Sequence record: KJ019143.1
Direction: 5' to 3' (one strand)
Length of the DNA stretch: 64,000 bases
The translations under genes and the position numbers were made by a program. Of this stretch, positions 9,392 through 59,043 are shown one piece after another (within the stretch, counting starts at the first letter, position 1; each line of letters begins with the position of its first letter). Below the pieces are notes generated by a model, which saw only the letters and a list, made by a program, of their open reading frames with translations, searched no databases and had not been told where the DNA came from.

Positions 9392-9430
9392 AAACACATA
9401 AATAAGATATGTAAAGTTCTTATTACAACA

Positions 9431-9540
9431 CTTCCATCTAACCGAGACCTACGGGGAAGTAAAATACGTCTCTAATACCTACACCGGAGGGTGGTGTAGG
9501 AATAATACTATCGTCAGCTCCCCCTGGCACTACTTACCCT
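9431..9540 (+). ncRNA. Structured psbA 5' leader, PhotoRC-II-like RNA motif
   Basis: CTTCC(9431-35)/GGAAG(9455-59) stem crossed by GAGAC(9444-48)/GTCTC(9468-72), plus hairpin CCTACACC/GGTGTAGG (9478-9500). Position matches the PhotoRC-II motif. Confidence 0.7.
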
Positions 9541-57830: not shown

Positions 57831-57853
57831 ACTATTACTTTTTGGAAAACATT

Positions 57854-58459
57854 ATGACAGAAGCGACAGAAACCAAGAAACCGCGTAGCGCACGAAAGGC
57901 ACGCAAACCAGCGGCACCCAAAGTCCCTACCTCCCTACCAAACAATCCTTTGATGTTTGAGATTCTTGACATGGCATCCCGTACTAGGGGTACTGAAAAG
58001 AAGGTAGATGTTCTCAAGAGATATGGGTGTGGTGCTCTAAAGGCACTATTCATCTGGAACTTTGATGAAACTGTAGAGTCTGCTCTACCACCAGGTGAGG
58101 TTCCCTACTCTGGATATGAAGAACAGCATGTATACAGTGGAACACTAACTGATAAGATTGAAGAGTCTTCACGTCAGATGTATGAGAATGGAAGTTTCTC
58201 ATTGGGTTCTACTGATGCCAACGCTAAGACTACACTAAGGGCACAATGGAAGAACCTCTATCACTTTGTTGAGGGTGGTAATGGTGGTCTATCTAAAACA
58301 CGTCGTGAGATGATGTTTATCAACCTCCTAGAATCTGTTCATCCCCTGGAAGCAGAGATCCTCATCCTAGTCAAGGATAAGGAACTTGACACCAAGTATA
58401 AGGTTCCCTTTGAGGTTGTAGAAGAAGCATTCCCCGAGATCCAATGGGGAGGACGTTGA
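57854..58459 (+). CDS. Conserved T4-like cyanophage hypothetical protein
   Basis: 'LFIWNFDE...LPPGEVPY', 'LYHFVEGGN' and 'LESVHPLEAEIL'. Confidence 0.8.
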   Translation: MTEATETKKPRSARKARKPAAPKVPTSLPNNPLMFEILDMASRTRGTEKKVDVLKRYGCGALKALFIWNFDETVESALPPGEVPYSGYEEQHVYSGTLTDKIEESSRQMYENGSFSLGSTDANAKTTLRAQWKNLYHFVEGGNGGLSKTRREMMFINLLESVHPLEAEILILVKDKELDTKYKVPFEVVEEAFPEIQWGGR

Positions 58460-58485
58460 CATAAATACAAAGGATATGTTATAAT
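58456..58485 (+). promoter_or_regulatory. Consensus sigma70 promoter overlapped by an NtcA-like box
   Basis: TTGACA (58456-61)-18 nt-TATAAT (58480-85) with TGn; GTT-N8-TAC at 58455-68. Confidence 0.85.
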
Positions 58486-58492
58486 ATCCACA

Positions 58493-58579
58493 CGTTCAAC
58501 CCACTTCGGTGGGTCGCAAGTAAGTCGCGGAACGGATTCGTTCATCCAGGAAACTGGACGCAAACGACTGAAGGAACGG
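58493..58579 (+). ncRNA. Tandem glutamine-riboswitch-like aptamers (glnA/Downstream-peptide family)
   Basis: Two copies of CGTTCA-[hairpin]-CGCAA...GGAACGG (58493-535 and 58539-579). Hairpins are ACCCAC-TTCG-GTGGGT and TCCAG-GAAA-CTGGA; P1 is CGTTC/GAACG. Confidence 0.8.
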
Positions 58580-58612
58580 GTTTTAACTAACCTCAACTTC
58601 AGGAGTACTACT

Positions 58613-58780
58613 ATGAACACTCTCGCACTCATCAAAAAGCAGATCAACAAAGCTGCCGCACTCCACAACGCTCAGATCTCTCACACCGCCTATCGTGGTG
58701 TTGAGTATGATGTTAGTTGTGATCAGTCTTCCGAGACACATGGCACTTTCTGCTACCGCGGACGCACTTATAACAAGTGA
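58613..58780 (+). CDS. DUF4278 / GifB(IF17)-like peptide, 55 aa, not in ORF track
   Basis: MNTLALIKKQINKAAALHNAQISHTAYRGVEYDVSCDQSSETHGTFCYRGRTYNK has two YRGxxY motifs; AGGAG RBS. Confidence 0.85.
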   Translation: MNTLALIKKQINKAAALHNAQISHTAYRGVEYDVSCDQSSETHGTFCYRGRTYNK

Positions 58781-58801
58781 GTCCTAACTGAATAGTGTAG
58801 G

Positions 58802-58832
58802 AAAGGGAAGGACTTGTTTCTTCCCTTTTTTT
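58802..58832 (+). terminator. Intrinsic terminator
   Basis: AAAGGGAAG/CTTCCCTTT stem plus T run. Confidence 0.85.
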
Positions 58833-58863
58833 GTGCTATAATATAAACAAGTATTCTATCATC

Positions 58864-59043
58864 ATGGACACAGACAAAGTAAAGTTTCTCATTCAATCCA
58901 TAGAGGTTCTCATTGATGAACTAAAATCAGAAGTATATGCTGAGGGTGAAACTTTTAAAGTAAGTGAAACCCAGTACTCAGAGGAATCAGAAATTCCAAC
59001 GACTATAACAAACTTTTATCCTGAAGTGACGGACGATCTATGA
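58864..59043 (+). CDS. Conserved cyanophage hypothetical protein
   Basis: MDTDKVKFLIQSIEVLIDELKSEVY; ATGA overlap with thyX. Confidence 0.7.
   Translation: MDTDKVKFLIQSIEVLIDELKSEVYAEGETFKVSETQYSEESEIPTTITNFYPEVTDDL

Follow-up and report, generated by a model that had tools for sequence, protein, structure and literature searches.

Glutamine riboswitches are RNA sensors of nitrogen status in marine picocyanobacteria. One described form, the glutamine-I aptamer (glnA motif, RF01739; PMC2864571, PMC6212724), has several features in common with the element described here, namely an outer P1 of CGUUC and GAACG, a P2 hairpin, a covarying long-range pair, the loop-E strands CGNAAGUA and GAAG, a P3 helix and a DUF4278-type ORF downstream. 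It differs in that P3 here ends in a second three-way junction, aptamer-like and 37 nt long, which reaches a maximum of about 250 nt in relatives, and in that the long forms of the present element are missed by Rfam. The glutamine-II aptamer (Downstream-peptide motif, RF01704; PDB 6QN3, PMC6698751) shares with our element the sequences CGUUCA, CGCA with a C:G long-range pair, and GGAACGG, as well as the hosts, the class of gene controlled and a variable core pair, C5:G36. It is distinguished by a P2 strand after GGAACGG and a pseudoknot, neither of which is present here.

In the crystal, glutamine-II dimerises by domain swapping, the core helix being a hybrid, and a riboswitch in two pieces has been engineered (PMC6698751, PMC7357161), so the pocket is compatible with exchanged strands. 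Core strands of two units are thus exchanged to build each pocket, as we describe below. The crystal dimer forms between molecules and is considered an artefact of crystallisation, whereas the exchange reported here is within one chain, nested, and conserved by selection.

Tandem arrangements of glutamine aptamers have been catalogued (Sherlock 2022, PMC9481103): there are 157 doublets and 4 triplets, which are classed as pseudo-cooperative, have multiple expression platforms and are treated as independent riboswitches. These also have two glutamine-type repeat units per leader, but in the present element the units are separated by 1–5 nt, are interdigitated and serve one platform. That review of tandem riboswitches makes no mention of nesting, and some of its doublets may be the nested element. 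Apart from Ames & Breaker 2011 (RNA Biol 8:82), which lies outside the comparison, no published account of nested glutamine aptamers was found; an alignment belonging to that paper shows wide insert columns in P3. The tandem glycine riboswitch likewise has two sites for one amino acid, a single platform and a logic that may be cooperative; its aptamers stand side by side and make tertiary contacts, whereas in the present element a stem of one aptamer houses the other, and a helix is common to both.

Circularly permuted natural RNAs are familiar among ribozymes, the hammerhead types I–III and the twister permutations being examples. They resemble the present case in that the core is opened at a different stem, and differ in that here the permuted RNA is a putative riboswitch aptamer. 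No natural circularly permuted riboswitch aptamer was found in the literature searched.

What is new here is a variant of the glutamine riboswitch with nested aptamers sharing P3, which is widespread in cyanophages and would bind glutamine.

The locus and its features

The window, that is, the whole 64,000-nt stretch of record KJ019143.1 that was analysed, is 96–100% identical to Synechococcus phage ACG-2014f. A blastn search with 58440-58800 matched 395 phage records, nearly all of them Synechococcus or Prochlorococcus cyanophages. The element at 58493-58579 is part of a leader that has a DUF6433 gene on its 5' side and a 55-aa ORF on its 3' side. We consider it likely to be one composite glutamine riboswitch with two nested cores, for which we propose an ON switch linked to the ribosome-binding site. 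The features of the locus, all on the plus strand, are as follows.

57842-58459, plus: upstream gene, DUF6433 / phrog_461, 205 aa; its stop (58457-59) lies inside the -35 hexamer of the riboswitch promoter
58456-58485, plus: promoter, TTGACA, 18-nt spacer with TG, TATAAT; consensus match 12/12, sigma-70-type
58493-58497, plus: a1, CGUUC, 5' strand of outer P1, pairs with 58574-58578 (RF01739 alignment, MFE fold, covariation)
58499-58514, plus: H1, outer P2 hairpin, 6 bp, UUCG loop (Rfam, MFE fold, covariation)
58515-58522, plus: L1, CGCAAGUA, outer joining strand; C58517 makes a long-range pair with G58579, and AGUA (58519-22) is the 5' half of loop E
58523-58527, plus: x, AGUCG, first pentamer, 5' strand of the shared P3 (Rfam alignment, MFE fold, covariation)
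58529-58535, plus: b1, GGAACGG, inner aptamer, core strand of 3' type; helix of 58530-34 with 58539-43, long-range pair of G58535 with C58561
58536-58538, plus: linker, 3 nt, between the trailing G of b1 and a2
58539-58543, plus: a2, CGUUC, inner aptamer, core strand of 5' type; forms a helix with 58530-34, capped by a 4-nt loop (58535-38)
58545-58558, plus: H2, inner hairpin, 5 bp, GAAA loop (MFE fold, RNAalifold, pair counts)
58559-58564, plus: L2, CGCAAA, inner joining strand; loop-E GUA absent (sequence, covariation)
58565-58569, plus: x', CGACU, second pentamer, 3' strand of the shared P3 (Rfam alignment, MFE fold, covariation)
58570-58573, plus: GAAG, 3' half of loop E (GAA, 58570-72) and the G before b2 (Rfam alignment)
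58574-58579, plus: b2, GAACG + G, 3' strand of outer P1 and outer long-range partner (Rfam, MFE fold, covariation)
58597-58605, plus: CUUCAG (58597-602), alternative partner of 58568-73, overlapping the Shine-Dalgarno sequence AGGAG (58601-05) (MFE fold, covariation)
58613-58780, plus: putatively regulated ORF, 55 aa, two YRG motifs, DUF4278/IF17-like (Pfam and PHROG matches)
58805-58832, plus: terminator-like hairpin, GGGAAG / CUUCCC, 9-nt loop, followed by a T run (read from the sequence)

The promoter ends 7 nt before a1, which would put the transcript start at 58493 or just before it. Of 215 distinct regions upstream of homologous elements, 194 have a similar promoter that ends 7–9 nt 5' of the first CGUUC. 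An NtcA-like box (GTT-N8-TAC, 58455-58468, over the -35) was considered as a conserved part of the element and rejected, since GTAN8TAC occurs in only 34 of the same 215 distinct upstream regions.

The 55-aa ORF belongs to phrog_545 (E = 1.4e-35). Its match to Pfam DUF4278 (E = 2.7e-4, 21.7 bits) is below the cut-off of 25.3, and a downstream ORF with YRG motifs is found across the homologues. The terminator-like hairpin beyond it is absent from the output of the hairpin scanner, its 9-nt loop being larger than the scanner's maximum of 8 nt. One RNA-library contig ends at 58831, near this hairpin, but contig ends cannot prove RNA ends; the stretch is present in contigs of six RNA-library runs, and contigs cannot show start, strand or transcription. 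Directly 3' of the hairpin is a second TATAAT-type box (gctataat, 58835-58842), and a 70-aa ORF occupies 58831-59043. With promoter-like boxes on both sides, the three components (riboswitch, peptide gene, terminator) resemble a self-contained cassette. Elsewhere in the window, at 9418-9513 (+), there is a full-length match to the PhotoRC-II RNA motif (RF01717, 69.4 bits against a cut-off of 39), a known cis-regulatory motif of cyanophages.

Nested pairing of the core strands

The glutamine-I model RF01739 matches 58491-58582 over its full length (positions 1-53) at 41.1 bits, against a gathering cut-off of 35. It aligns the whole stretch as one aptamer, with P1 formed by 58493-97 and 58574-78, P2 corresponding to H1, and P3 to AGU/ACU, the start of x and the end of x', around a 41-nt insert (58526-58566). 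P3 is a short hairpin in RF01739, while here it is closed by the 37-nt three-way junction in place of a loop. Outer P1 encloses the whole aptamer, both in the MFE fold and in the homologues, and there is a covarying Watson-Crick long-range pair, C58517:G58579. Compensatory changes in H1 are found at all four pairs counted. The apparent loop-E strands, AGUA (58519-22) and GAA (58570-72), flank P3 and are conserved as A(A/G)GUA and (G/A)AAG.

The original prediction treated the two repeat units as separate aptamers locked together by a loop-loop pairing. The pentamers on which it rested, AGTCG at 58523-58527 and CGACT at 58565-58569, are indeed exact reverse complements, each flanked by a CGCA joining strand and a GGAACGG segment. 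It was also correct that neither unit has an internal P3 hairpin, there being 7 nt between the joining strand and GGAACG in each, and that unit 2 has no downstream pseudoknot partner, as no complementary strand follows its GGAACGG. Unit 2 was also considered as a glutamine-II aptamer with a downstream P2 strand and rejected: the alignment of RF01704 to 58536-58586, at 32.1 bits, falls short of the cut-off of 33, and its stem contains mismatched or non-standard pairs. A complement of 5 bp arises by chance in 5.4% of shuffles of two 15-nt joining regions, and in 12% of equally spaced pairs of 15-mers across the window. In a single sequence the complementarity alone is thus weak evidence, and its significance comes from the homologues.

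Homologous loci were collected from IMG/VR using a pattern for the repeat arrangement, the downstream peptide, and three forced-variant patterns, in which a non-consensus base was required at one position and its candidate partners were left free. Parsing yielded 231 distinct full elements from cyanophage contigs, all with the same architecture, and a linker of 1–5 nt (mostly 2–3 nt) between the trailing G of b1 and a2. The nested layout is common to hundreds of marine cyanophage contigs (cyanomyovirus). Parts of the motif were fixed in several scans, so their invariance is partly by construction, and the unbiased subset consists only of the 51 distinct loci anchored on the peptide. One of the three forced-variant scans, with the pattern CGTTDA, gave mostly chance matches, the CGUUU class alone being useful. 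The matches listed from a scan of host genome contigs, at least 120, were all chance matches with no true element among them.

Because the four core strands are identical in the window, the window alone cannot distinguish a nested from a tandem arrangement, and the homologues must decide. The counts for the four informative positions are given below; they come from variant classes that were deliberately enriched, and are not phylogenetically independent events.

a1 position 5: nested, with b2, 230/231 paired (C:G 226, U:A 4); tandem, with b1, 184/231, 47 mismatches
a2 position 5: nested, with b1, 231/231 paired (G:C 185, C:G 43, A:U 3); tandem, with b2, 188/231, 43 mismatches
L1 position 3: nested, with the base after b2, 228/231 paired (C:G 209, G:C 19); tandem, with the base after b1, 174/231, 57 mismatches
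L2 position 3: nested, with the base after b1, 224/231 paired (C:G 193, G:C 28, U:A 2, G:U 1); tandem, with the base after b2, 177/231, 54 mismatches

Each nested pair is therefore seen as at least two Watson-Crick types, whereas in the tandem reading every variant is a mismatch. In four loci the strands a1, b1, a2 and b2 read CGUUU, CAACG, CGUUG and AAACG, which fits only a1:b2 with b1:a2. Most variant classes lie on several P3 backgrounds (two for the C:G class of b1:a2, seven for the G:C class of the outer long-range pair and five for the G:C class of the inner one), so one inherited event does not account for each of the main classes; the U:A class of a1:b2 and the A:U class of b1:a2 have one P3 background each. 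In alignment A1, of 41 short forms, the outer long-range pair is CG in 31 and GC in 10 when read as nested, and 10 cells are unpaired when read as tandem.

Structure prediction agrees. The MFE fold of 58489-58585 is nested, with a b1:a2 hairpin and H2 beside it, and RNAalifold gives a nested consensus for the 41 short homologues, again with a1:b2 and the b1:a2 hairpin. The nearest-neighbour energies are -30.2 kcal/mol for the nested and -21.7 kcal/mol for the tandem arrangement. The nested topology, its helices and both long-range pairs (C58517:G58579 and C58561:G58535), each of which covaries independently of the other, are thus shown by computation. It follows that the aptamers do not each close their own P1, as had been supposed: the P1 strands and the long-range pairs are exchanged between the units.

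The covariation check that had been suggested for the pentamer helix was carried out on the 231 distinct elements, in which x and x' covary strongly. In an analysis of 192 elements 90% of P3 cells are paired, compared with 79% after shuffling of partners, and none of 2000 shuffles reaches the observed value. The partner sets include AGUCG/CGACU, AGUCA/UGACU, GGUCG/CGACU, GGAAGG/CCUUCC and GGACGG/CCGCCC, and there is an 8-bp family, AGCCGACN/N'GYYGACU, with U:A, G:C or A:U as its eighth pair. Two more sets, AGUCU/AGACU and GAGCAUA/UAUGCUC (the latter in locus L125), are in loci that fall outside the parsed 231. A MAFFT alignment of the 41 short forms has changes on both sides at four of eight P3 pairs, and in the longer families C·A or A·C mismatches are frequent at position 3. 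The helix between the units is therefore real and joins them in such a way that they cannot fold independently, but it is not a loop-loop contact. Nor does a kissing helix take the place of P3, since in the Rfam alignment this helix is itself the P3 of a glnA-type aptamer.

The inner core and its relatives

Inside P3 the order of segments, 5' to 3', is x, CG, b1, a short loop, a2, A, H2, L2 and x'. As read from the sequence, this is the order of a glutamine-I aptamer whose ends have been joined and whose P3 loop has been opened; in other words, the core is circularly permuted and makes use of the same P3 from its far end. The inner core has no loop E, and its joining strands are shorter than in any solved glutamine aptamer. 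It has the core helix, with b1:a2 paired in all 231 elements by three types of pair, the CGN joining strand, the long-range pair, and evidence of selection.

Many relatives are considerably longer. In 159 of the 231 distinct elements H2 is 140–210 nt long, examples being L210:2369-2533 (-), L203:3091-3276 (-), L128 and L147, while the phage of the window has an H2 without an ORF. In 141 of 150 long forms examined, H2 contains an intact ORF of 53–62 aa (phrog_504). Its AUG is 9–11 nt after the start of a2, its likely Shine-Dalgarno sequence (GGAG) is formed by the end of b1 and the linker, and its stop consists of the last U of x' and GA or AA from the loop-E strand. From this placing of the stop, the phrog_504 peptides end in WDAND or WDAHD. 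At gathering thresholds Rfam found none of the six ORF-bearing relatives tested, and three of the four short ones.

A few loci depart from this plan. In L125:300-612 (+), where P3 is of the GAGCAUA/UAUGCUC type, a longer ORF ending ...EWDASRA* runs into the position of H1 and L1, a third CGUUC is at the expected place of L2, and there is no a1 within 330 nt upstream of b2. At a guess from its sequence, this ORF might encode an HNH-type nuclease, in which case a mobile gene may have inserted into the riboswitch. Loci L132, L133, L135 and L137 (about 420-610) are a single lineage without a1, H1, L1, x and b1; the coding region reaches a2, what remains is a2, an ORF-bearing H2, L2, x' and b2, and the only core pairing possible is a2:b2. 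In L205, L277 and L306, b2 (there GAACGA) is followed by CUGAAGGAAAC, a short hairpin and another CGUUCAUCCCAU unit, so more than two units can be chained. These chains may be the triplets counted in PMC9481103.

The tolerance of H2 for inserts of 140–210 nt, and the loss of a2 in L138, raise the question of whether the inner junction is functional at all. It could be that there is a single glnA-type aptamer, and that the junction inside its P3, left over from a duplication or serving as a scaffold, does not bind glutamine; Rfam does treat 58526-58566 as an insertion, and the lack of loop E in the inner unit would be in keeping with this. A scaffold, on the other hand, needs complementarity only. 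In the 51 unbiased, peptide-anchored loci the inner GGAACGG, CGUUCA and CGCA are invariant except for the pair b1-36:a2-5, and this sole varying core pair corresponds to C5:G36, the core pair reported to be variable in the glutamine-II structure (PMC6698751). In the same structure the long-range pair C19:G41 ends the ligand-binding helix, and glutamine-I has an equivalent pair (PMC6698751). The inner counterpart of C19:G41 joins position 3 of L2 to the base after b1, which lies in the closing loop of the b1:a2 hairpin and yet covaries with L2. When a scan forced a base other than G after b1 and left L2 free, it returned 65 loci with C and an L2 of CGG, 8 with A and CGU, and 2 with U and CGG, together with about 14 mismatches, so that L2 is complementary to the variant base in 75 of about 90 variant loci. 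This inner long-range pair is mismatched in 7 of the 231 elements, which is what might be expected of a remnant. The covariation nevertheless implies that the inner core keeps the long-range pair of an aptamer and, together with the invariant core, argues for a working core rather than a spacer. We therefore regard an inert insert as unlikely.

It is also conceivable that the tandem pairings form first during transcription, with a1:b1 as a first sensor, and are then replaced by the nested ones, both states being functional. Transcription does produce a1, H1, L1 and b1 first, in relatives b1 and b2 can lie up to about 200 nt apart, and four of the five a1:b1 pairs are possible in every variant; but among the 231 elements neither the fifth a1:b1 pair nor a long-range pair from L1 to b1 shows signs of selection, and such a relay, which adds an extra state without evidence, seems to us distinctly improbable. 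A transient a1:b1 pairing during transcription may still occur.

As for two self-closed aptamers (58493-97/58530-34 and 58539-43/58574-78) locked by a 5-bp kissing pseudoknot of their internal loops, the identical core strands make these pairings possible on paper, the glutamine-II model nearly reaches its cut-off on unit 2, the Rfam glutamine model aligns the a2-to-b2 unit alone in L559 and L571, and the lineage without the 5' half has only a2:b2 to form, but the arrangement is rejected as hardly credible on covariation and energy: the tandem partners are mismatched in 43–57 of 231 elements where the nested ones stay complementary, the fold is about 8.5 kcal/mol worse before a kissing helix that adds only about -4.5 kcal/mol (the value of the isolated x:x' duplex), the halves of loop E occur only in L1 and before b2, as suits one helix between both, and three short linkers would have to cross a 5-bp helix.

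A proposed switch and its significance

The preferred reading, one composite riboswitch with two nested cores, has a single expression platform. There is none after unit 1, which is followed by the 3-nt linker (58536-38), and after unit 2 there is one alternative helix, linked to the ribosome-binding site; in pseudo-cooperative tandems, by comparison, each aptamer has its own platform. In the MFE fold of a longer leader that reaches the start codon, CUGAAG (58568-73) is base-paired with CUUCAG (58597-602). The former, made up of the end of x' and the loop-E strand, is the proposed switching sequence. The alternative helix is only 6 bp long and covers two Shine-Dalgarno bases. Among the homologues, U stands opposite in all 47 cases of a loop-E strand beginning with A, and an initial G faces C in 45, U in 29 and A in 2, an association with a Fisher p of 1e-13 when kinship is ignored.

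On the basis of these observations, we hypothesise that both cores bind L-glutamine, and that binding would fix P3 and loop E. This would withdraw CUGAAG from its partner at the Shine-Dalgarno site. The formation of P3 and loop E would thus release the ribosome-binding site, and the 55-aa DUF4278/IF17-like ORF would be translated at high glutamine, making the element an ON switch. The direction suggested here would agree with that of the glutamine riboswitches known to precede DUF4278/gifB genes, which are ON switches (PMC6212724). Since both sites would stabilise one shared helix, with one platform for the two cores, the dose-response to glutamine may be cooperative.

It is worth adding that the full leader, in its MFE fold, pairs GUUCA of a1 (58494-58498) with UGAAC at the start-codon region (58614-58618, within AUGAAC). 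This may be a second way of hiding the start codon in the unbound state; it is absent in relatives whose ORF starts with AUGGCA.

Riboswitches have been thought rare in phages, a 2017 survey having reported two glutamine aptamers in cyanophage genomes (PMC5473149). The failure of Rfam to detect the ORF-bearing forms explains the undercount, and implies that counts of phage riboswitches based on Rfam are underestimates. The nested two-core design is compact and conserved, and has mostly been missed by the standard models.

It may be the first circularly permuted riboswitch aptamer. More tentatively, and as a possibility that we would place somewhat below even, it could be the first natural riboswitch in which a permuted aptamer for the same ligand sits in the stem of another, the two forming a cooperative clamp that is coupled to translation of the inner ORF. 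If so, two glutamine sites would clamp one helix, and an RNA of about 90 nt would respond cooperatively, in the manner of a switch. In most cyanophages, where the inner hairpin would also enclose a translated phrog_504 ORF, with its ribosome-binding site in the inner core and its stop in P3 and loop E, sensing and the translation of two genes would then be physically coupled. The element provides a natural test case for the coupling of two ligand sites through one helix. The gene that it would control is, by similarity, a putative IF17-like inhibitor of glutamine synthetase, and the finding suggests how phages read the nitrogen status of their host during infection.
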